Sequence record: NC_048046.1
Strand: one strand, 5' to 3'
DNA: 64,000 bases
Shown here: in pieces, positions 14,886 to 24,744 of the stretch
How positions within the stretch are numbered: position 1 is the stretch's first letter
Layout: each line of letters begins with the position of its first letter
Made by a program: the position numbers and the translations under genes
Notes under the pieces: model-generated
The model's database searches: none
What the model saw: the letters and a program-made list of their open reading frames with translations, nothing else
What the model was told of the DNA's origin: nothing

Positions 14886-14900
14886 GCCGGGATAACTGGC

Positions 14901-14975
14901 ATGGTTAACCGAAAGCGTCAAGAATCCTGGCATTTCTCTCCAGGCTTGACCGTTAAGGCCCTTATGGATAAGGAA
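14901..14975. promoter_or_regulatory. divergent promoter region between the replication module and the ncRNA island
   Basis: ATGGTTAAC 14901-14909, palindrome CGTCAAGAATCCTGGCA 14916-14932 (minus TTGACG), plus-strand TTGACC at 14946. Confidence 0.55.
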
Positions 14976-15170
14976 TAATCAACCGAGGCGGGTCCACCAC
15001 ACCAACCGCGTGCCTCACGCTCTGCGCGCGAATTGACCGTAACTCGAAATCGCCGGCGCCTCAGGTGGAGGAGGTCAAGGCAATGGGCGAAGGACGGGCG
15101 CGGCGAGCGTATAATCGAGGCCGGCTAAAGCTCCTGGGAGTGTAGGTGTCCTGCCACCGTTCCCACGATG

Positions 15171-15249
15171 CACGGGATCGACAGGTCCGTGTGACGCGAA
15201 CGCCGGCCGAGAACAGACGACAAGGCGTGACGCCCGGAGAGAGTGCCGG
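15171..15249 (+). ncRNA. repeated structured RNA module, copy 1
   Basis: CACGG/CCGTG helix, TGACGCGAACGCCGGCCGA, GGCGTGACG, CCGG-AGAGAGTG-CCGG hairpin. Confidence 0.7.
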
Positions 15250-15374
15250 ACTTCTTGACACGACGACCTAGATCGGAGACACCTTGGGTCGACTAGGGGA
15301 CCTGGGGTGGTGCGAATTGGCTTCCACCTACAGTCATCTGGCAGCCTTTGGGACCCCAGGCTGTCGGGCTCAAC

Positions 15375-15473
15375 GGTGATGAGATGCCAACGGCTGGCTG
15401 GAATGCCGAATTCACCTGACGCGAACGCCGGCCGAGACGATACGACCAGGGCGTGACGGGGGCCAGAGGCCTC
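15375..15473 (+). ncRNA. repeated structured RNA module, copy 2
   Basis: GGTGA/TCACC helix, same 19-nt core at 15417, GGGGCC-AGA-GGCCTC hairpin. Confidence 0.7.
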
Positions 15474-15642
15474 GATCCTTTACTTGACCGGTGCCAAGAG
15501 TTCTGGCATCCAGACTGTGATTTCTCAGGGGCCTCGGTTTCTGAGGGACCTAATCAGGCGATCGTGACCGTCTCAATGGTGCTGTCCAGCGAGAAGATCG
15601 TGAGCCCGCGTATGAGATGTCATTTACGCGCGGGACACCCAT

Positions 15643-15728
15643 GGTGGTAGGGAGCCGCTGAGTGGCCCACCTGACGCGAACGCCGGCCGAAAAGTACGAT
15701 CAGGCGTGACGATGGGGAGAGAACCCAT
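15643..15728 (+). ncRNA. repeated structured RNA module, copy 3
   Basis: GGTGG/CCACC helix, core at 15672, ATGGG-GAGAGAA-CCCAT hairpin. Confidence 0.7.
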
Positions 15729-15770
15729 TCAACTTCCGCAGGCGGTCGAGGCCGTCGATTAGGAATTCAA

Positions 15771-16364
15771 ATGCCTACTACCATCGAAACGGACAACGTC
15801 CGTCGCGTGGACTACACCGTTCGCGCCCACATCACCTACTCCGTCCATGAACATGTCAGCCACGGGTCTTCCGGCTCGGAGCGTGAAATCGTACGCAGTG
15901 TGCCTCTGGGCGAGGCGCGCAGCATGGCGGAAATGCACGCAAAGGCGTCGACCGGACAGGTTAAGTTGCGTACGGTCGATGTCCAGGAGGACTACTATGG
16001 GGCGGACAGCCTGCCTTTGGGGCTCCAGCATGTGTTTCGGGAACTGCTTGAGCATCCCAACGGTACGAAGTGGGTGCTCTCGCGAGTAAATCCCCACACT
16101 GGACCGATGCTACGCATTCAACGTTACACGCCTCAGGAAATCCCTCTGACGCCGGCGCGTAATCCTTGGGATGAACTCACGGTCGCCCAAATGCGTCAGA
16201 CGCTCGTCGCCCTTCGTGCGCTGCCGTGGGAGGCTGCGAAGGCTCTGCGCCTTCAAGCCTATCAGGATCGCGACGTTCATTTTATCGAAGTGCTCAACCG
16301 CGCTGAGGTCGCCATGGACGTTATCGACCCGGCGCAGGTCAACGAATTGCGCCTGACGGACTAG
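15771..16364 (+). CDS. hypothetical protein (197 aa) embedded in the ncRNA island
   Basis: AGGA RBS at 15761, ATG, clean stop; the only CDS inside the RNA island. Confidence 0.75.
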   Translation: MPTTIETDNVRRVDYTVRAHITYSVHEHVSHGSSGSEREIVRSVPLGEARSMAEMHAKASTGQVKLRTVDVQEDYYGADSLPLGLQHVFRELLEHPNGTKWVLSRVNPHTGPMLRIQRYTPQEIPLTPARNPWDELTVAQMRQTLVALRALPWEAAKALRLQAYQDRDVHFIEVLNRAEVAMDVIDPAQVNELRLTD

Positions 16365-16511
16365 TTTCTTGACAAGAGGCGGTGCTGCGCATATCCAGAT
16401 CGGAGATGTCGCAGCACCGCTGCCGGCGACGTCCAGGGTGCTGTCCCTGGAATAACCGATCGGCTTGGAAGACAACTCCTTGGGGTAAGGACTGCTGAAC
16501 CCCTGACGGCT

Positions 16512-16595
16512 GACAGGCTCCGGGAGTCAATGTCCTGTCTGACGCGAACGCCGGCCGAGATTAGGCGACGAGGCGTGACGGGGGCCAGAGGCCCT
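16512..16595 (+). ncRNA. repeated structured RNA module, copy 4
   Basis: GACAGG/CCTGTC helix, core at 16540, GGGGCC-AGA-GGCCCT hairpin; ends 6 nt before the tRNA. Confidence 0.7.
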
Positions 16596-16601
16596 ACACC
16601 T

Positions 16602-16686
16602 GCTACGGTGGACTGAATGGTAAGGCGCGGGACTGCAAATCCTGTCGGCGAAAGCCTCGTGGGTTCGATTCCCACCCGTAGCTCCA
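16602..16686 (+). tRNA. tRNA with GCA (Cys) anticodon and long variable arm
   Basis: acceptor GCTACGG/CCGTAGC, U73, encoded CCA, anticodon loop CTGCAAA, V-arm GGC-GAAA-GCC, T-arm GTGGG-TTCGATT-CCCAC. Confidence 0.88.
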
Positions 16687-16715
16687 AAATTCCTGACATT
16701 TTTATGCCAGCCTGC

Positions 16716-16744
16716 TTGACAACTGAAAAGTCGTCCGGTACACA
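16716..16744 (+). promoter_or_regulatory. sigma70-like promoter of the tmRNA
   Basis: TTGACA-17 nt-TACACA; the -35 is the right half of the palindrome TGCCAGCCTGCTTGACA (16705-16721). Confidence 0.65.
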
Positions 16745-16750
16745 CTCCTC

Positions 16751-17175
16751 ATCGTCGTAATTCGGATGACGTGATTGGTGTCAAGACGCGGGTGCGATTC
16801 CCGCCGGCTCCACCAAAACCCCACCGGCCGACGCTTCGGCGTCACGACCTGCCCCAGCGACAGGTCGGTATCTGAACGGTACGGTGGGGTTCTGATGGGG
16901 CCGATCAGTTTCGATTGGCATTGAGAGTGAAGGACGCGACGTAGGGTGATCTCCTAGCCAAGGCTTCGGCTGAGGTAATTGGGTCAAACGCTGACAAATG
17001 TCAACGACAACGACGCTCCCGTGATGGAGCAACGTCTGGCGGCCTAAGGGCCTCCAGCGGCGCCCGGTGGGGGCGTGGCAACAGAACCCCACCACCCTGC
17101 TTCCGCAGCCGGAGGCGTTGGTACAGGGCGTTTCTGTCGGCAACCGTTTCGCCGCCTTTACGTCTCCGGCTACGA
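16751..17175 (+). ncRNA. ssrA: circularly permuted two-piece tmRNA (ends approximate)
   Basis: acceptor piece ending GCGGGTGCGATTCCCGCCGGCTCCACCA (16815) precedes the coding piece starting GGGGCCG (16897) with G3.U70; tag frame 17000-17047 VNDNDAPVMEQRLAA*. Confidence 0.9.
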
Positions 17176-17186
17176 AAACAGGTTTG

Positions 17187-17264
17187 GGGAGTAGTCCTCC
17201 GAGGGATCGGAGAATAACGCTCTCCGGGGAGGCGCCTGGGACCATCCAGCCCAGACCGTCTCCC
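17187..17264 (+). ncRNA. candidate multibranched structured RNA
   Basis: GGGAG/CTCCC closing stem, CCTCC/GGAGG, CGGAGA/TCTCCG and CTGGG/CCCAG helices. Confidence 0.45.
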
Positions 17265-17273
17265 GAATTTTAT

Positions 17274-17336
17274 GCCGGGGATAGGGTGGTCGCTCGCCCT
17301 AAACAGTTCGGGTAAGCTCCGGCTGCCCCGGCTCCA
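17274..17336 (+). ncRNA. 63-nt tRNA-like mini RNA
   Basis: 7-bp GCCGGGG/CCCCGGC stem plus T plus CCA; only two internal hairpins, no TTCRA loop. Confidence 0.5.
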
Positions 17337-17343
17337 AGTTTGA

Positions 17344-17420
17344 TGCGGGGTGGAGCAGTCCGGTAGCTCGTTTGGCTCATAACCAAAAGGTCGAGGGTTC
17401 AAATCCCTCCCCCGCATCCA
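17344..17420 (+). tRNA. tRNA-Met (CAT), initiator-like body
   Basis: TGCGGGG/CCCCGCA acceptor, GGAGCAGTCCGGTAGCTC D-arm, loop CTCATAA, GAGGG-TTCAAAT-CCCTC, CCA. Confidence 0.92.
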
Positions 17421-17544
17421 CAAGCTGAAGCTCCGATGGCGGCCCTAGGCCGCAGCTTTACCCGGTCCCACGTCGGACAAGGCCGGGGTCTAGGTGGTGA
17501 GATATGATCGACGCCGGCGGAGCGCCAAGCCACCTTCCGCCACC

Positions 17545-17580
17545 AACGCCGTGTGCGTGACAAGCCTGGAGAGAACGGGC
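17545..17580 (+). ncRNA. repeated RNA module, short copy 5
   Basis: AACGC-CGTGT-GCGTGAC-AA-GCCTG-GAGAGAA-CGGGC. Confidence 0.55.
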
Positions 17581-17610
17581 ACTCCAATCCGGGGTATGAG
17601 GCCGGATGTA

Positions 17611-17656
17611 GCGAACGCCAGCGAGATCGGCGTGACTGGTGGGGGAGAGGACCCAC
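17611..17656 (+). ncRNA. repeated RNA module, copy 6
   Basis: GCGAACGCC-AGCGAGATC-GGCGTGAC-TG-GTGGG-GGAGAGGA-CCCAC. Confidence 0.6.
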
Positions 17657-17739
17657 GCTGATTTTGCTGAACGCACGCTACGGCGTGCGTTTTGCTAATT
17701 CAGCTTCGTCGTGGGGGGTTCGACTCCCCAAGTTCGCGC

Positions 17740-17813
17740 CTCCTAGGGCGTTAGGGCTGCGAGGGACAGCGGCGGATAAACGGGAGTTGCCGGTTCGAGT
17801 CCGGCCTGGGAGG
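17740..17813 (+). ncRNA. tRNA-like element with canonical acceptor and T arms but a non-canonical middle
   Basis: CTCCTAG/CTGGGAG stem, GCCGG-TTCGAGT-CCGGC T-arm; no U33 anticodon loop, no CCA. Confidence 0.5.
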
Positions 17814-17868
17814 GCACTAGGAACCCTGCTGGTGGAGGTAATTGGAGAACCTCGTCCGACCTATTTTT

Positions 17869-17955
17869 GGTGTGGTGGCTCGACAGGTAAGGCGCCGGCC
17901 TCATAAGCCGGAGGGCGAAAGTCCTATGTAGGTTCAAATCCTACCCACACCTCCA
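17869..17955 (+). tRNA. tRNA with CAT anticodon and long variable arm
   Basis: GGTGTGG/CCACACC, U73, CCA; CCGGC-CTCATAA-GCCGG; V-arm AGGGC-GAAA-GTCCT; GTAGG-TTCAAAT-CCTAC. Confidence 0.88.
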
Positions 17956-17978
17956 ACTATGCGACGCCCCAGCGTCCG

Positions 17979-18145
17979 GACGACTCCCTGGTCGGTAACC
18001 ACTCCGCCACAGGGACTCCCAGCCGGGGATAGCATGCCGAGGACGGAAGGCGCATGCCGTGACTGCCGGGAGAGTACGGTATCGAGTGAAAGCCGTGAGG
18101 CAGACCCTAGTTGCTCGACGGGGGTCGTGAGGTGGAAGCCCTCAC
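17979..18145 (+). ncRNA. candidate structured RNA containing module copy 7 (18043-18081)
   Basis: 9-bp long-range helix ACGACTCCC/GGGGGTCGT; ACGG...CCGTGAC-TGCCG-GGAGAGTA-CGGTA; GCC-GTGA-GGC; GTGAGG-TGGAAGC-CCTCAC. Confidence 0.55.
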
Positions 18146-18153
18146 ACCTTCCC

Positions 18154-18402
18154 TTAATTGAACAAAAGCTGCTTGCTGTCGGCACGGAATGCGACGCCGA
18201 GTTCGATCAGGATGCGCTTGATCGTGGCGTAGAAGTTCAGCACAGCACGGTGATCCGAGATCGAACCACCCGTTACCAATGTGCGGGTCTTCCCGGCATG
18301 CTGGACGCGAATCTTGCAGTGCTTGTTGCGCTCGACCTCGAACTCCACGTCGTGGTGCTTGAGGATGCGTTTCGCCATCTCTACGGTGTCGCGGCCAGCC
18401 AT
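18154..18402 (-). CDS. HicA-like small protein (82 aa)
   Basis: helix-three strands-helix pattern with RNKHCKIR, size typical of HicA/dsRBD-fold proteins; no HicB nearby. Confidence 0.45.
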   Translation of the reverse strand: MAGRDTVEMAKRILKHHDVEFEVERNKHCKIRVQHAGKTRTLVTGGSISDHRAVLNFYATIKRILIELGVAFRADSKQLLFN

Positions 18403-18403
18403 G

Positions 18404-20341
18404 TCAGGCTCCCATTGCTTGGTTGATATTGTCTTCCTTTTCCTTCGCTGCCTGTGCGATTCGCGCATCAAGCGAACCGTTGGCGACGAGGAAGTAGGAC
18501 ATGATCTTTTCGGCCGTCTGCCCGATGCGGCAGGCGCGGTCTTCGCACTGCTCGATCATGCTCGGGACCCAATCGCCTTCAGCGAAGGCGACGTCGGCCG
18601 CTCGCGTCAGCGTGAAGCCCACGCCGGCGGCGGCGATGTTTCCGATGAAGAGCCGGCAGGATTCGTCGGTCTGGAACCGATCGACCTGGGCCTGCCGCTT
18701 GTGCATGGGCGTGCCACCCCAGATGACCGCCGGGCACCAATTATCCATCCGCTCGGCGATCGCCTTGACGACGTCGGAGTGATAGGCGAACAGCAGTAGC
18801 TTCTCGCCGCCTTCCAGGAAGTCGGAGACCCAGGGCGTGACACAGGAGAGCTTGGCGATTCCGAGTTCGCGCCGCACGGCCGCCATCTCCTCGAACAGGA
18901 TCGAGACCGCCGGCGGCTCCAGGCCGGCGACGGCAGCGGCGTAGTCGAGGTCCAGGGTGCGCCAGTTAGGGTGGTCTGGGTCCATGTCGGCCGAGAAGCC
19001 GATGCGGGCCGCGTTGTCGATGATCTGGGCGCCGTGGACGATTTCGTCGATGACCTCGCCCTGGCCGAGATGGACCTTCTCATAGAGCTTCAGCATCTGC
19101 GCCAGTTCGTCCTCACGGGCGACTAGGGCGCGGATTTCCGGACTGTCCATCGGCACGACGACGCGGCGCTTAGGCGGTAGTTCAGGTAGCACCTCGCGCT
19201 TCAGACGTCGGACCATGAAGCTGCTGCGCATCTTCTCGCCGAGTTCGACGAGGTTGGTCGCGCCATTAGTCACGAGCGCGCCGTTCTTGCCTCGCATCGG
19301 ATCGTGGTAGGCGCCGCAGTATTTGTAGACGTAGTCGAGGTACTTGGTGCCCAGGCCGTTCGGGTCGAAGGCCTTGACGATCGGCCACAACTCCACAGGC
19401 CGAGACATCATCGGCGTACCGGATAGGAACACACGGCGATTGGCGTCGATCGCCGTATGCCAGACCGACTCCGTCGACAGGCCCTTTGCGGCCCGCTCCT
19501 TCTTCTGCTGCTTAGTGTAGGTCTTCTGACCTCCGAGCACGAACAAGGTTCGGCCGCTCTGATCAGTCTTCAGCGCGTGGCATTCGTCGCAGACGACATA
19601 GTCCCAGGTCCGACTCTTGATCTGGTTGGTGAAACGGTCCAGGATGTCGTAGTTGATGATGACGATGTCGGTATTAGGCCAATAGTCCTTCTGAACCTCA
19701 GCGACTCGATACTTTGGCTTACCCTGAACCTCGACCTTTTTGAACTTAGGCTGACCAGCCTTGGGGCCGGACTTGTAGACGCCGTCTTCGACCTTTTCGT
19801 AAGCTTTTGTGAAGCCGTCCTGAACGCGCTCCACGCGCGATGCCTCGGCGATCCCGAACGTCAGGTTCGGGACCATCCACTTGTCGATCTCACGCTTCCA
19901 GTTGACCTTCAGCGATGCCGGCACGATGAAGATCGCCGAGTTGATCGACGTGTCGGCGTTGAGTACGCCGATCGCCTGGATCGTCTTGCCAAGGCCCGGC
20001 TGATCCGCGATCAGCGTGTCCTTCCGCATCAGCGCGTACTCGATGCCGGCGCGCTGATAGGGGAGGTATTCGAGCCCAGGAGGCGACGGCGGAACGTAGT
20101 CCGTCGTCGCCTTCCACGACATCTCTTCGCTGATCTTGGCGACTTCGAGTGTGTGCTGGACGTGATCTAGTGCTCGCTCGCGCCAGTAGACGCCAGTGAC
20201 CTTTTTAGCGATGTCCAGGCGGTCGGTAACCCAGGCGCGACGAAGCTTCGAGAACGTGAAGCCCGCCTCCTTCCAGAGGTGGCGTTCCTCGTACGTCCCC
20301 ATCCCGTAAAAGAGGTTGTCGCGGAAGTCGATATGGGCCAT
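18404..20341 (-). CDS. SNF2-family helicase
   Basis: DQPGLGKT, VPASL, VCDECH, SGTP, AAGVGFTLT, QCEDRACRIGQ. Confidence 0.93.
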   Translation of the reverse strand: MAHIDFRDNLFYGMGTYEERHLWKEAGFTFSKLRRAWVTDRLDIAKKVTGVYWRERALDHVQHTLEVAKISEEMSWKATTDYVPPSPPGLEYLPYQRAGIEYALMRKDTLIADQPGLGKTIQAIGVLNADTSINSAIFIVPASLKVNWKREIDKWMVPNLTFGIAEASRVERVQDGFTKAYEKVEDGVYKSGPKAGQPKFKKVEVQGKPKYRVAEVQKDYWPNTDIVIINYDILDRFTNQIKSRTWDYVVCDECHALKTDQSGRTLFVLGGQKTYTKQQKKERAAKGLSTESVWHTAIDANRRVFLSGTPMMSRPVELWPIVKAFDPNGLGTKYLDYVYKYCGAYHDPMRGKNGALVTNGATNLVELGEKMRSSFMVRRLKREVLPELPPKRRVVVPMDSPEIRALVAREDELAQMLKLYEKVHLGQGEVIDEIVHGAQIIDNAARIGFSADMDPDHPNWRTLDLDYAAAVAGLEPPAVSILFEEMAAVRRELGIAKLSCVTPWVSDFLEGGEKLLLFAYHSDVVKAIAERMDNWCPAVIWGGTPMHKRQAQVDRFQTDESCRLFIGNIAAAGVGFTLTRAADVAFAEGDWVPSMIEQCEDRACRIGQTAEKIMSYFLVANGSLDARIAQAAKEKEDNINQAMGA

Positions 20342-20749: not shown

Positions 20750-21958
20750 CTACTGGAACTCGGTGCCGCCCTTGCGGGTCAGGTACGCTTCAGAAACGTG
20801 CTTCAGGATCGGGCGCAGGCGCTTTCCCGAGTCGAGCGTACGCTTGCGCTGATCGCCGGCGGCCGTGACCACCACACCTTCGCGGACGTTCGGGCCATGC
20901 TCTTGATCCATCTTGCGGCCGAGCGTAGTCGTGCCCGACGCCAGCTTGTCGATCACGGTGCGATCGAACGGCCCCTTGTAGAGGACTGGCACGCGGTCGA
21001 CGCCCAGGATGGTGAAGAAGGTTTCCTTGTCGGCGTCGTCCAGATAGACCGTACCGAGGTTATCGGTGATCGCGACGTCGAATGCAGCGAACGCCTTGGT
21101 CGTGAGGCCGTAGTGCAGGTCTTGTACGCCGGCGCCGTAGACCTCGCCCAGCAGGTGGACACGGCAGCCGGGGAACCGGGCCTGGGCCACGGCCTGGAGC
21201 TTGTCGGCCAGGGGCGCGAGGGCCTTGACGTACAGAGTCTTCTCCAGGTTCTTCTCGACGTTGATAAACGTCAGGCCGTCGGCGCCCATACCCTTCGTCG
21301 AGATCGCGACGCGGCCGTCACCGAACAATTCGGGATCGGGCGCGGCGTCATCAACGTGGCTGATGCGAGCCAGAGTACCGTGCAGCTTCTCGGTGACGAC
21401 GACTTCTTCGCCGTCCTCGAACAGGTCCGGGAACGCCTTGATGTTCTCGATGTCGTAGTCCAGACGTGACTCGAAGACGCCCTTCATCAGGCCGTCCATG
21501 CTGGTCGGCACTTCTGGGATGTACTTGGTGATGCCGAAGAACGACGCGACGTCTTCGTACAGCGCGACCTTCTTACGGCCGGCGGGGTAGACGCCTTGAG
21601 CGGCGTCCCCGTAGCCGATCACGGTGCGGCCGTTGACGTCACTGGTCTTCCAGACGAGGCCCTGGCTCAGCACACCACGCAGCGTGATAGCCTTAACGCG
21701 ATTGCCGCGCGTGCCCGCCAGGATGCCGACACCCTTGTCCGCGTTCCAGTAGCCGCGCTCCTGGAGATGCTGGTCCGGAACGACCGCGCCCTCGGGCACA
21801 TAGATGACGCTCTCGCCCTTGGCGTAGCGGTGGGAGCCGTCGGGGTTCTTGTTGGCGATCGCCTCGTAGCCACGAATACGCAGGATCGACAGGCGGTCGG
21901 CATTGGGGTGGTCGTAGACGTCGTCGACCAGCAGGATCGGGACTTCAAAAGTGCTCAT
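20750..21958 (-). CDS. RNA ligase (DRB0094/Rnl2-like) with N-terminal OB domain
   Basis: HPNADRL OB-fold start, TEKLHGT adenylation motif, GEVYG, FDV, REGVVV. Confidence 0.88.
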   Translation of the reverse strand: MSTFEVPILLVDDVYDHPNADRLSILRIRGYEAIANKNPDGSHRYAKGESVIYVPEGAVVPDQHLQERGYWNADKGVGILAGTRGNRVKAITLRGVLSQGLVWKTSDVNGRTVIGYGDAAQGVYPAGRKKVALYEDVASFFGITKYIPEVPTSMDGLMKGVFESRLDYDIENIKAFPDLFEDGEEVVVTEKLHGTLARISHVDDAAPDPELFGDGRVAISTKGMGADGLTFINVEKNLEKTLYVKALAPLADKLQAVAQARFPGCRVHLLGEVYGAGVQDLHYGLTTKAFAAFDVAITDNLGTVYLDDADKETFFTILGVDRVPVLYKGPFDRTVIDKLASGTTTLGRKMDQEHGPNVREGVVVTAAGDQRKRTLDSGKRLRPILKHVSEAYLTRKGGTEFQ

Positions 21959-22031: not shown

Positions 22032-22244
22032 TCAGTAGGGCTGGCGCTTCAGCGCCTGAGCGTCGTCCCAGAAGAGGTAGGTGATCAGGACGATCAGCGC
22101 GGGGACGATCCACCAACCCAGCAGGTTGGCGAGTGCGGCCACCAGAGCCCACGACAGAAAGCCGGCAATCACGCCACCGAAGCGGCTCCAGTTGAGCCGC
22201 ACTTCGCCGGCGACTTGAGACATCGAACGCATCGTTTCCTCCAT
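22032..22244 (-). CDS. small membrane protein (70 aa)
   Basis: two hydrophobic helices, coupled to the upstream stop. Confidence 0.55.
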   Translation of the reverse strand: MEETMRSMSQVAGEVRLNWSRFGGVIAGFLSWALVAALANLLGWWIVPALIVLITYLFWDDAQALKRQPY

Positions 22245-22705
22245 TATTGTTCTTCCTTCCGCAACGCCGTACGCAGGGCCGTGAGCCGGCGGCAGAACTC
22301 CGCCTGGGTCAGGACCGTGTCGCGTGGGTCGCGCTTACCGATAGAATGCGTTAGCACCGCATCGCCGGTGGCGAGCAGGGCCTTGCGGAAGCCCTCGTTG
22401 GTGGCCAGCGCCATATAGGCGCGATCCAGTAGGGCTTGATACTCGGGGCCGTGGCGATCGTACTCGACACCATTCCACCACAACTTTTGAGCGCGCTGCC
22501 AGTGCTTGGAGCGGCCGGCGCCGCGCTTCTTCGCCACGAGGCCGACGTTCTTGACGACCTCGCGCTGCATGTGGACCTTGTCGAACTTGAACGCCTGAAG
22601 CAGGCCTTCCATCGACGCGACCTGGAGGCCGTCGAACCAGAAGGGGTGCGGAGCGAAGTTCGAAAGCGCGGATGACGGGTAGCCGCGACCGGAGCCGATA
22701 TCCAT
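22244..22705 (-). CDS. NADAR-family protein (T4 gp30.3-like)
   Basis: YPSSALSNFAPHPF, SMEGLLQAFK, LWWNG, LTHSIG, TVLTQAEF closely follow the gp30.3/NADAR pattern. Confidence 0.82.
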   Translation of the reverse strand: MDIGSGRGYPSSALSNFAPHPFWFDGLQVASMEGLLQAFKFDKVHMQREVVKNVGLVAKKRGAGRSKHWQRAQKLWWNGVEYDRHGPEYQALLDRAYMALATNEGFRKALLATGDAVLTHSIGKRDPRDTVLTQAEFCRRLTALRTALRKEEQ

Positions 22706-23546: not shown

Positions 23547-23887
23547 CAGAAGTCGAGCCCCAGGTCTTTACGCTGCTCAGGCGTCAGCGCCGCCATAGCC
23601 GCGCTCTTGGCTTCGGCTTTTTGCCGCCCACGCTGCGCGATCAGATCGATGTTAAGGTCCGAAGCCGGGAAGCCCTTCTCGGCGCCGTCGGCCAATAGGT
23701 AATACCGGCCGTCGACCTTGATCGCGTAGCGTTCGCGCACAGTCCCCATCCCGCCGAAGTAGCCCTTGCCGGTCGCGGCATGGTCAGCCTCGCCCGAGGA
23801 GGCGAAGTAGCCAACCACACCGCCGACGGCGCCCCGGTCATCGACGGTGGTGTAGGTGACGTACAGTCGGACGATCTTCCAATCCAT
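23546..23887 (-). CDS. hypothetical protein (113 aa)
   Basis: operon-coupled ORF. Confidence 0.6.
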   Translation of the reverse strand: MDWKIVRLYVTYTTVDDRGAVGGVVGYFASSGEADHAATGKGYFGGMGTVRERYAIKVDGRYYLLADGAEKGFPASDLNIDLIAQRGRQKAEAKSAAMAALTPEQRKDLGLDF

Positions 23888-24744
23888 CAGCCGACCCCCA
23901 GCGCGTCGAGCAGCAGTTGATTGGCCTCGCGCATGAAGGCCTCGTTCGGAGGCAGCCTGTCGAAGCCCTTATCCTTGACCCAGCCGATCGAAGATTCGAT
24001 GTAGCTGTCCAGCGCCGGGATACGCGTGCCGTGACCGACTTCGCCCATCGTCGCCTTACGGGTCAAGAGCTTCGCGACCTCGTCGCGGGCGATGTTGGGG
24101 ATGATGTCGTGCGACAGTAGCTGCGGCAGGGTCATCGGCGGAACTTCGCCGTAGCGTTGAATCCAGGTGATCGCGCAGGCGCCCCGGATGGCGTAGAGGT
24201 ACTTCTTCAGATTGACGGTGGTGTAGCCCTTGATGGCGACGCCATCGCGCTCAGCCTGGGCGACTACCTCGGCCGACGGACGGTTGCTGATCTCGCCTTG
24301 ATAGCATTGGCGCGTCAGTCCGAAGTAGTGACGGGCGCTGGCCTCGGGGCTGGAGTTGCGCTTGATCAGGTCGCGCAGCTTGTATGGCAGCGGACCGTGT
24401 TCACGGTAGATCAGCGGGCTGGAGAGCCACTCGGCAACCGTGGCATTGCCCTTGACGAGCAGGTCCAGGGCCTTGCGCAGGTCCCAGCCGTTCAGGTCCC
24501 AGACGCCTTCTATCGGGCGCTCGATCACGTCGCGGGGCGTCGACAGGCCCAGGTAGTGAGAGAGCGGGCGGACATAGAAGAAGCGAACGTCGTTGTCGCT
24601 GTCCGGCGACGGGAAGCCCCAGGCTCGCGAGCCGCTCTCCACCGCGAACACGATGGTGACGTTGTCTTCGGCCTCGACGCGGCCCAGGCGGTTGTTGGCC
24701 TCGCCGTAGACATCCAGCGGCAGAGTGGGGGCGGTGAACGACAT
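23887..24744 (-). CDS. DNA pol beta-superfamily nucleotidyltransferase (YcgL/RlaP family)
   Basis: AVESGSRAWGFPSPDSDNDVRF, GWDLRKAL, EWLSSPLIY, KKYLY. Confidence 0.88.
   Translation of the reverse strand: MSFTAPTLPLDVYGEANNRLGRVEAEDNVTIVFAVESGSRAWGFPSPDSDNDVRFFYVRPLSHYLGLSTPRDVIERPIEGVWDLNGWDLRKALDLLVKGNATVAEWLSSPLIYREHGPLPYKLRDLIKRNSSPEASARHYFGLTRQCYQGEISNRPSAEVVAQAERDGVAIKGYTTVNLKKYLYAIRGACAITWIQRYGEVPPMTLPQLLSHDIIPNIARDEVAKLLTRKATMGEVGHGTRIPALDSYIESSIGWVKDKGFDRLPPNEAFMREANQLLLDALGVG

Follow-up and report, generated by a model that had tools for sequence, protein, structure and literature searches.

Caulobacter phage CcrPW (MH588545, 308,141 bp), a giant phiCbK-like siphovirus of the genus Colossusvirus, carries two transfer RNA (tRNA) genes with long variable arms, one with the anticodon GCA (Cys) and one with CAU. 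Both lie in the 64,000-nt stretch of record NC_048046.1 that we analysed (the window), which a BLAST search against phage records placed at bases 124001-188000 of the CcrPW genome; positions are those of the window unless they are given as genome coordinates. According to textbooks and reviews, long variable arms in bacteria are confined to the class II tRNAs for Leu, Ser, Tyr and Sec, and the exceptions (allo-tRNAs and nev-tRNAs) signal mischarging. We believe that the two CcrPW genes probably function as phage tRNAs and read their codons in the normal way, and that the arm is an add-on to them and not an identity switch. The analysis shows the genes, their folds and conservation, the homology of the Cys body, the difference in distribution between phages and bacteria, and the agreement of discriminator with anticodon. 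The attached amino acid, the expression and the use of both tRNAs are what we infer from the sequence.

Structure, origin and charging of the two tRNAs

The two genes are part of a 1.4-kb island on the + strand in which ARAGORN found four RNA genes, all four of which were confirmed by Rfam (Table 1). Both exceeded the gathering score of 29 bits of the Rfam tRNA model RF00005, with E-values of 3e-7 for the GCA tRNA and 5e-9 for the class II CAU tRNA. ARAGORN gave each of them a 7-bp acceptor stem, a 5-bp T stem, a 3-bp D stem and an anticodon stem of 5-6 bp. The discriminator is U73 in both (at 16683 and 17952), with an encoded CCA next to it, and the minimum free energy structure from RNAfold is the same five-arm fold for both. 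An earlier reading of the letters alone, the preliminary description, had reported an 85-nt GCA tRNA and an 87-nt CAU tRNA with GAAA-capped variable arms, 7/5 acceptor and T stems and U73, and ARAGORN, Rfam and RNAfold showed this anatomy to be exact. The variable regions are more stable than their own shuffles (z = -4.1 for Cys and z = -5.1 for CAU). The extra arms have 3-4 bp (4-5 bp in the CAU tRNA) followed by two or three unpaired 3' bases, and the tRNA-Ser type has 5-7 bp and one unpaired base. The anticodon loops are of the host type, CUGCAAA in the GCA tRNA and CUCAUAA in the class II CAU tRNA.

To place the GCA tRNA, we searched bacterial genomes, one for each species, for the signature formed by its D arm and anticodon arm, GGTWAGGCGNGGGAYTGCAAATC, leaving the length of the variable loop unconstrained. 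The signature was found at 76 bacterial loci holding 75 GCA tRNAs, all of them class I (variable loop of 3-8 nt) and all with U73, so that 75 of the 75 bacterial genome matches were tRNA-Cys. When the variable region was cut out and the anticodon masked, the mean best hit of the phage Cys family was 35.7 to bacterial tRNA-Cys and at most 21 to other isotypes. By these comparisons the body of the GCA tRNA is that of an ordinary bacterial tRNA-Cys, to which a hairpin has been added in the variable loop, and the gene does not derive from a Leu, Ser or Tyr tRNA. An origin from tRNA-Leu had been considered from the D loop and the GAAA arm, and was dropped because the same D and anticodon arms occur in ordinary bacterial tRNA-Cys. 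What the phage gene lacks is the short class I loop of bacterial tRNA-Cys, in place of which it has 13 nt with the hairpin. The major determinants of cysteinyl-tRNA synthetase (CysRS) are U73 and the GCA anticodon (PMC9976931), and the GCA tRNA has both. It also has C2:G71, a pair that acts against SerRS in E. coli. Because U73 and GCA are kept, the host CysRS should charge this tRNA with cysteine.

The class II CAU tRNA is less straightforward. Its best hits among the alphaproteobacterial initiator, Met-like and Ile2-like tRNAs reach only 18-23, against 25.9 for tRNA-Cys, and its nearest paralogue in CcrPW is the class II tRNA-Cys (28, with the rest at 20 or below). The copies in Caulobacter phages carry the tRNA-Cys-type D-arm motif GGTAAGGC. 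Among approximately 2,400 tRNAs, the motif GGT[AT]AGGC was present in 17 of 174 Cys tRNAs vs 14 of 2201 others, a 17-fold enrichment (p = 2.5e-12), and in 0 of 239 other CAU tRNAs. Most likely, then, this gene would have arisen as a duplicate of such a Cys tRNA gene by a switch of anticodon, an ancestry that would explain both its U73 and its Cys-type D arm.

As to what the class II CAU tRNA carries, a tRNA-Val given the anticodon CAU is charged by the E. coli MetRS equally well as tRNA-Met (PMC9976931), therefore the anticodon alone suffices. The phage gene has the CAU of an elongator tRNA-Met, and it lacks A73 and a body like that of the host tRNA-Met. It does not look like an initiator, which would have a mismatch or weak pair at 1:72 and three G:C pairs in its anticodon stem, as it has G1:C72 and the anticodon stem CCGGC/GCCGG. 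In the CcrPW open reading frames (ORFs) ATG occurs at 19.9 per 1000 codons and ATA at 0.5 per 1000 (39 of approximately 72,000 codons). The anticodon rule of MetRS, the needs of the other synthetases and the scarcity of ATA make methionine the most likely cargo, so that this gene would most likely be an elongator tRNA-Met reading AUG. The neighbouring initiator-like tRNA(CAU) would serve initiation.

It is also conceivable, and in our judgement distinctly unlikely, that the class II CAU tRNA is a tRNA-Ile2, in which the host TilS would make lysidine at C34 and the rare AUA would be read. Many phage genes called tRNA-Met are in fact Ile2, and the anticodon loop CUCAUAA, with its A37 and A38, is compatible with this identity. 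The class II CAU tRNA is also no less similar to the alphaproteobacterial Ile2-like type (23.1) than to the Met-like type (22.7). Against this, ATA is rare, and the rest of the phage tRNA set corresponds to abundant codons. Position 73 and the anticodon are strong determinants for IleRS (PMC9976931), and A73 is replaced by U or C in the phage family. The acceptor stem, read by eye as GGUGUGG or GGUACGG, is without the GGGCC-type C4:G69 and C5:G68 of the alphaproteobacterial Ile2-like type; in CcrPW these pairs are G4:C69 and U5:A68.

Returning to normal charging, the discriminator of class II phage tRNAs tracks the amino acid of the anticodon, which argues for it. We looked for such tRNAs in the viral contigs of IMG/VR with pattern scans (anticodon loop, 21-31 nt, T arm), and the figures hold among the matches listed. 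Among these, the discriminator of class II tRNAs is U in 53 of 55 for Cys, G in 18 of 21 for Asn and in all six for Asp, A in all 12 for Ile and all nine for Val, and G in both for Trp. For Thr-UGU in the viral sample, U and A are split similarly in class II (10 and 5) and class I (30 and 8). This concordance is therefore against a uniform mischarged class with A73 (derived from Leu or Tyr) or with G73 (Ser type). When the arm and the anticodon loop were masked, 92 of 186 class II tRNAs had their own isotype as the nearest class I tRNA, where 12 were expected; for Cys these were 36 of 50. Taken together, discriminators, arm geometry and nearest-isotype counts argue that the arm was added to, or kept on, tRNAs still served by their cognate synthetase.

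The preliminary description had proposed mischarged or recoding tRNAs. The CAU tRNA, or both, would then be charged by SerRS or by LeuRS or TyrRS, or the CAU tRNA by CysRS, and Ser or Cys would be placed at AUG. We consider this very unlikely. A73 is crucial for LeuRS and is also listed in the identity of TyrRS, and CysRS needs GCA (PMC9976931). Both class II tRNAs have U73 and so lack the identity of tRNA-Leu (A73) and of tRNA-Tyr (A73 with G34 and U35), which rules out LeuRS and TyrRS, and CAU is sufficient for MetRS. Nor is the geometry of the arm Ser-like. In its overall identity the GCA tRNA does not fit tRNA-Ser, given its 3-bp arm, its U73 and its C2:G71; the CAU tRNA is mixed, with an arm of 4-5 bp, two unpaired 3' bases and U73, yet also G2:C71 and C11:G24. 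Recoding would be costly because AUG is frequent, and this tRNA family has long been conserved in lytic phages with ordinary genes. The proposal thus runs against the canonical Cys body with its 75 of 75 signature matches, the discriminators that track the anticodon and arms that are unlike those of Ser. The suggestion in the same place that the genes are decoys found nothing in its favour.

Several points weigh against our reading, and recoding draws on some of them. In the CAU tRNA, U73 and a Cys-like body are combined with G1:C72, G2:C71, C11:G24, G30:C40 and an arm of 4-5 bp, which are listed SerRS determinants. A long arm with G73 or U73 has been taken as a sign of Ser identity in allo-tRNAs (Mukai et al., PMC5389517), and tRNA-Ser with U73 exist in phages, where they make up approximately one fifth of those sampled. 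Some serylation of the class II CAU tRNA may occur. The preliminary description had noted that U73 suits CysRS and is foreign to Met and Ile tRNAs, and this is borne out by the alphaproteobacterial CAU tRNAs, which have A73 in 39 of 39 cases (35 directly from ARAGORN and four one-base register shifts that we re-read by eye). The U73 or C73 of the phage CAU tRNAs, foreign to all of the alphaproteobacterial ones sampled, is a real departure. There is no clear homology of the class II CAU tRNA to the body of a host tRNA-Met. We infer the switch from Cys to CAU from modest similarity, and the copies in Brevundimonas phages have a different D loop, GGAATAGGC. None of the public sequencing runs contained this phage; the best matches were to the DNA of relatives, or to metagenomes with just the conserved initiator-like tRNA.

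A related thought is that the class II CAU tRNA is a dual-identity adaptor, with the body and U73 of Cys, the anticodon of Met and an arm compatible with Ser. Part of it would receive Cys or Ser in infected cells and place these amino acids at AUG. The probability that we give this is very low. If it were true, the phage would have a means to mistranslate deliberately, or to withstand depletion of methionine or of Met-tRNA.

Conservation, distribution and possible role of the arm

Orthologues of both genes are present in the phages CcrColossus, phiCbK and CcrRogue and in the Brevundimonas phages Marchewka, Kikimora and Bajun. Double compensatory changes occur in every stem, the extra arm included, and affect 13 of the 24 predicted pairs in the Cys family and 10 of the 23 in the CAU family. 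The loop of the extra arm varies (GAAA, GAGA, GCGA or GGAA in the Cys family; GAAA, GCAA, a UUCG-like loop or a pentaloop in the CAU family), the sequence of its stem drifts as well, and the hairpin is present in every case. As sequence and loop drift while the hairpin stays, selection therefore acts on a stable hairpin and not on its sequence. In the Cys family all seven orthologues have U73; in the class II CAU family, six phages have U73 and Kikimora has C73. The DNA identity between phiCbK and Colossus is 19% (Gill et al. 2012, PMC3556154).

Short hairpins of 3-4 bp with a tetraloop in the variable region are widespread in phages, on tRNAs for Cys, Met, Asn, Lys, Ile, Thr and others. Among the matches listed from the viral contigs of IMG/VR, ARAGORN confirmed at least 51 distinct class II tRNA-Cys and approximately 87 class II CAU tRNAs; many of the latter have initiator-like acceptor stems when read by eye. 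From a scan that ignored arm length, class II forms would make up approximately one tenth of viral tRNA-Cys. In clusters picked regardless of arms, approximately 5% of the tRNAs other than Leu, Ser and Tyr were long-armed, mainly Asn, Lys, Ile, Val and Met, although part of these are probably ARAGORN misfolds. Examples from known phages are the tRNA-Asn of phiKZ (87 nt, arm GGC-GAAA-GCC, G73; AF399011, about 269557-269645) and the tRNA-Lys(CUU) of Ruegeria phage vB_RpoS-V10, which has A73.

In bacteria the picture is different. No class II tRNA-Cys was present in 401 alphaproteobacterial genomes, where none of eight pattern matches was a tRNA; an ordinary class I tRNA-Cys was matched in 52 of 61 sampled genomes. 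Likewise, all 90 CAU matches in 41 alphaproteobacterial genomes were class I, and none was long-armed. The premise of the preliminary description, that long arms in bacteria are restricted to Leu, Ser, Tyr and Sec, thus held in our samples (0 of 401 genomes for Cys and 0 of 90 matches for CAU).

In the literature that we searched, we found no description of 7/5 class II tRNAs for Cys, Met, Lys or Asn in phages, and the reviews on non-canonical tRNAs and on tRNA identity (including PMC9976931) leave the phage class II forms unmentioned. The CcrPW genes belong to a widespread variant of ordinary tRNAs that is specific to phages and apparently without a published description. The preliminary description had regarded many described Cys or Met tRNAs with this arm and normal charging as telling against its idea of altered charging. 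Such arms are indeed found on many phage Cys and CAU tRNAs, and we found none of these described or with measured charging.

Why the arm is kept is a separate question. Our leading guess is protection from host nucleases or toxins directed at tRNAs, with stability of folding second. The presence in phages and absence from bacteria, the conservation of structure only and the genomic setting together point to a conflict between phage and host over tRNAs. The preliminary description had named nuclease-resistant replacements for host tRNAs cleaved by anticodon nucleases among its suggestions. One form of this conflict, which we hold as a tentative possibility, is that the hairpin, and perhaps the pyrimidine at position 73, would make these tRNAs poor substrates for host defences that cleave or modify tRNAs. 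It is compatible with normal charging, and as a consequence the phage would continue to decode Cys, Met, Lys, Asn and Trp after the host tRNAs had been destroyed. The class II forms are a phage speciality (approximately one tenth of viral tRNA-Cys vs none in the 401 genomes), the hairpin is conserved while its sequence and loop type drift, and an RNA-repair cassette with an RNA ligase, RlaP and a gp30.3-like protein is located 3-7 kb downstream. We also count in favour of this protective role that phage tRNAs counter PrrC, PARIS and retron-Eco7, and escape by changes in sequence as well (PMC10264068, PMC11555353, PMC13056530). However, a variable arm is not known to block any nuclease, and a nuclease that reads the anticodon loop is not evaded by loops of the host type. 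Just five of the 29 phage tRNAs bear a non-standard arm, and only their position ties the repair genes to the tRNAs.

Alternatively, the hairpin could be a tolerated, essentially neutral insertion, or the genes could be tRNA-like decoys outside translation; we think that either is unlikely. The variable region faces away from most synthetases and from the ribosome, so insertions are tolerated, and once an insertion is there its pairing might be kept just so that the loop does not become floppy. The stable form most easily reached is a GNRA hairpin, and such hairpins recur independently. Neutrality has difficulty with an arm that is retained across phage genera with only approximately 19% DNA identity (PMC3556154), and its presence in many unrelated phage lineages and in none of the sampled bacteria argues for an advantage specific to phages. 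Decoys would not be expected to have intact identity elements, an encoded CCA and a match to the codons.

Other RNAs of the island and the genome

Table 1. Features of the RNA gene island and of the RNA-repair genes downstream (window positions)
Feature	Position	Strand	Evidence or remark
20-nt repeat TGACGCGAACGCCGGCCGAG, fourth copy	16540-16559	+	43 nt 5' of tRNA-Cys
Class II tRNA-Cys(GCA), 85 nt	16602-16686	+	ARAGORN; Rfam 48.2 bits; annotated tRNA-Cys in MH588545
tRNA-Cys variable region, 13 nt, hairpin GGC-GAAA-GCC at 16647-16656	16646-16658	+	ARAGORN brackets, RNAfold
Permuted two-piece tmRNA between the tRNAs	16712-17138 (ARAGORN 16723-17138)	+	Rfam and ARAGORN
Initiator-like class I tRNA(CAU), 77 nt	17344-17420	+	ARAGORN; Rfam 68.3 bits
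Class II tRNA(CAU), 87 nt	17869-17955	+	ARAGORN; Rfam 54.7 bits
Class II CAU tRNA variable region, 16 nt, hairpin (A)GGGC-GAAA-GUCC(U) at 17912-17925	17912-17927	+	ARAGORN, RNAfold
RNA ligase	20750-21958	-	Domain match, PF09414, E 2e-18
T4 gp30.3-like protein	22244-22705	-	Domain match, PF08010, E 2e-57
RlaP nucleotidyltransferase of RNA-repair pathways	23887-24744	-	Domain match, PF10127, E 3e-66

The third tRNA of the island, the initiator-like tRNA(CAU), has U1:A72 and U73, and its anticodon stem contains just two G:C pairs. It is closest to the alphaproteobacterial initiators, which have A73, and in the relatives of CcrPW this tRNA has C1xU72 with C73. A pyrimidine at position 73 is common to all three tRNAs of the island.

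The tmRNA scored 90.4 bits with the Rfam model tmRNA_permuted and 66.8 bits with alpha_tmRNA, and ARAGORN gave the tag peptide VNDNDAPVMEQRLAA. It is unannotated in the CcrPW record. A tmRNA is also present in phiCbK and in Bajun, where it is annotated. Gill et al. 2012 (PMC3556154) counted tRNAs and reported no other RNA genes, therefore the tmRNA of the phiCbK group was missed there.

Further copies of the repeat TGACGCGAACGCCGGCCGAG are located at 15192-15211, 15417-15436 and 15672-15691 on the + strand; the four copies compare with 0.08 expected. The first three head non-coding units of approximately 200 nt, and the position of the repeat makes it a possible promoter element of the phage. 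Between the two CAU tRNAs, also on the + strand, there are two T-arm-like hairpins, at 17715-17729 (GGGG-TTCGACT-CCCC) and at 17789-17805 (GCCGG-TTCGAGT-CCGGC), which were called as tRNA by neither ARAGORN nor Rfam. The spacer at 17444-17642 is matched with two differences by a 199-nt contig from soil RNA-seq. This hints that the spacer of a close relative is transcribed, with carry-over of DNA as an alternative source of the contig.

Rfam at permissive E-values gave no further credible RNA family over 14900-18400, and a scan of 15000-18500 for sigma-70 promoters and terminators found nothing above chance. There was no Cys-, Met- or Ile-rich mini-ORF 5' of the tRNAs in the three + frames of 14950-16601, 17139-17343 and 17421-17868.

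The CcrPW genome has 29 tRNAs, all with an encoded CCA. The set matches the abundant codons of the phage and is without a Tyr, Thr or Phe tRNA. Apart from three Leu tRNAs, whose arms are likewise GAAA-capped, and two Ser tRNAs, long arms also occur on Trp-CCA, Lys-CUU and Asn-GUU, which are located outside the window; five of the 29 thus have a long arm that is non-standard. U73 is also found on Glu-UUC, Lys-CUU, one of the two Ile-GAU and Gln-CUG (genome coordinates 66536-66614, 69553-69642, 76213-76288 and 76489-76562), where bacteria normally have A or G; the tRNAs of this phage thus show an excess of U73. By hand pairing, the tRNA-Ser(CGA) at genome coordinates 70171-70259 looks like an 8/4 acceptor/T form, and it would fit with the (8/4) tRNA-Ser that occurs in alphaproteobacterial phages (Mukai et al. 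2017, PMC5389517). Elsewhere in the genome (111222-112076, + strand), an ORF of 284 amino acids matches the C-terminal domain of the RNA polymerase alpha subunit (alpha-CTD, E 8e-6) and has a sub-threshold match to the core of class II (Asp/Lys/Asn) synthetases (E 0.003). It is flanked by genes for a glycosyltransferase and a lysozyme.

Comparison with known systems

The 7/5 class II tRNAs for Cys, CAU, Asn, Lys, Trp and others are common in phage tRNA clusters, including those of the model phages phiCbK and phiKZ. If they are charged normally, they would prove by natural example that an extra arm is tolerated by CysRS, MetRS, AsnRS and LysRS, which would be useful for the design of orthogonal tRNAs. 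They also pose a clean question about the conflict between phage and host, namely what the arm protects against or enables, for which phiCbK or CcrPW on Caulobacter and phiKZ on Pseudomonas are tractable systems. For annotation they are a warning that the length of a tRNA is an unsafe guide to its isotype in phages.

The canonical class I tRNA-Cys of bacteria shares with the phage GCA tRNA the anticodon, U73, the 7/5 stems, the 3-bp D stem with the loop GGTAAGGC and the anticodon arm. The phage form differs in its variable region, which has 13 nt and a GAAA hairpin where the bacterial one has 3-8 nt, in an extra base in the D loop and in an A11/G24 mismatch in the D stem. With the bacterial class II tRNAs (Leu, Ser, Tyr and Sec), the phage pair shares a five-arm cloverleaf, a 3-bp D stem and an arm capped by a tetraloop. 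Unlike them, it has Cys and Met anticodons and neither the A73 of Leu and Tyr nor the G73 of Ser. The extra arms, short and with two to three or more unpaired 3' bases, resemble the Tyr and Leu types and not the Ser type.

Non-standard tRNAs with long arms have been described before. Mukai et al. 2017 (PMC5389517) reported 8/4 tRNA-Ser and tRNA-His in clusters of alphaproteobacterial phages, allo-tRNAs and the selC* tRNA-Cys, and 7/5 class II forms for Cys or Met are absent there. The allo-tRNAs and selC* tRNAs are similar to the CcrPW pair in being non-standard, with a long arm and anticodons other than those of Ser, and some are in phage clusters; selC* also has U73 and GCA. What is their own is an 8/4 or 9/3 branch, long anticodon and D stems, and a predicted Ser identity or, for selC*, a dedicated CysRS. 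Both phage tRNAs are plain 7/5 with a 3-bp D stem. The 115 nematode nev-tRNAs, all with A73, are derivatives of tRNA-Leu charged with Leu by LeuRS (Hamashima et al. 2012, PMC3333845). They too are 7/5 class II tRNAs that break the Leu/Ser/Tyr rule, in their case with Gly or Ile anticodons. In contrast to this Leu body with A73, the CcrPW pair has U73 and a Cys-type body, and the phage tRNAs keep the discriminator of the anticodon's amino acid.

The closest parallel in setting is with phage tRNAs that counter host defences, which are also copies of host isoacceptors found in tRNA clusters, in genomes with RNA-repair genes. The known escape of such tRNAs, by the tRNA-Tyr and tRNA-Lys of T5 and by variants in mycobacteriophages, is through abundance or changes in the anticodon loop (PMC11555353, PMC10264068). 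In CcrPW, the loops are host-like and the difference is the added arm and position 73.

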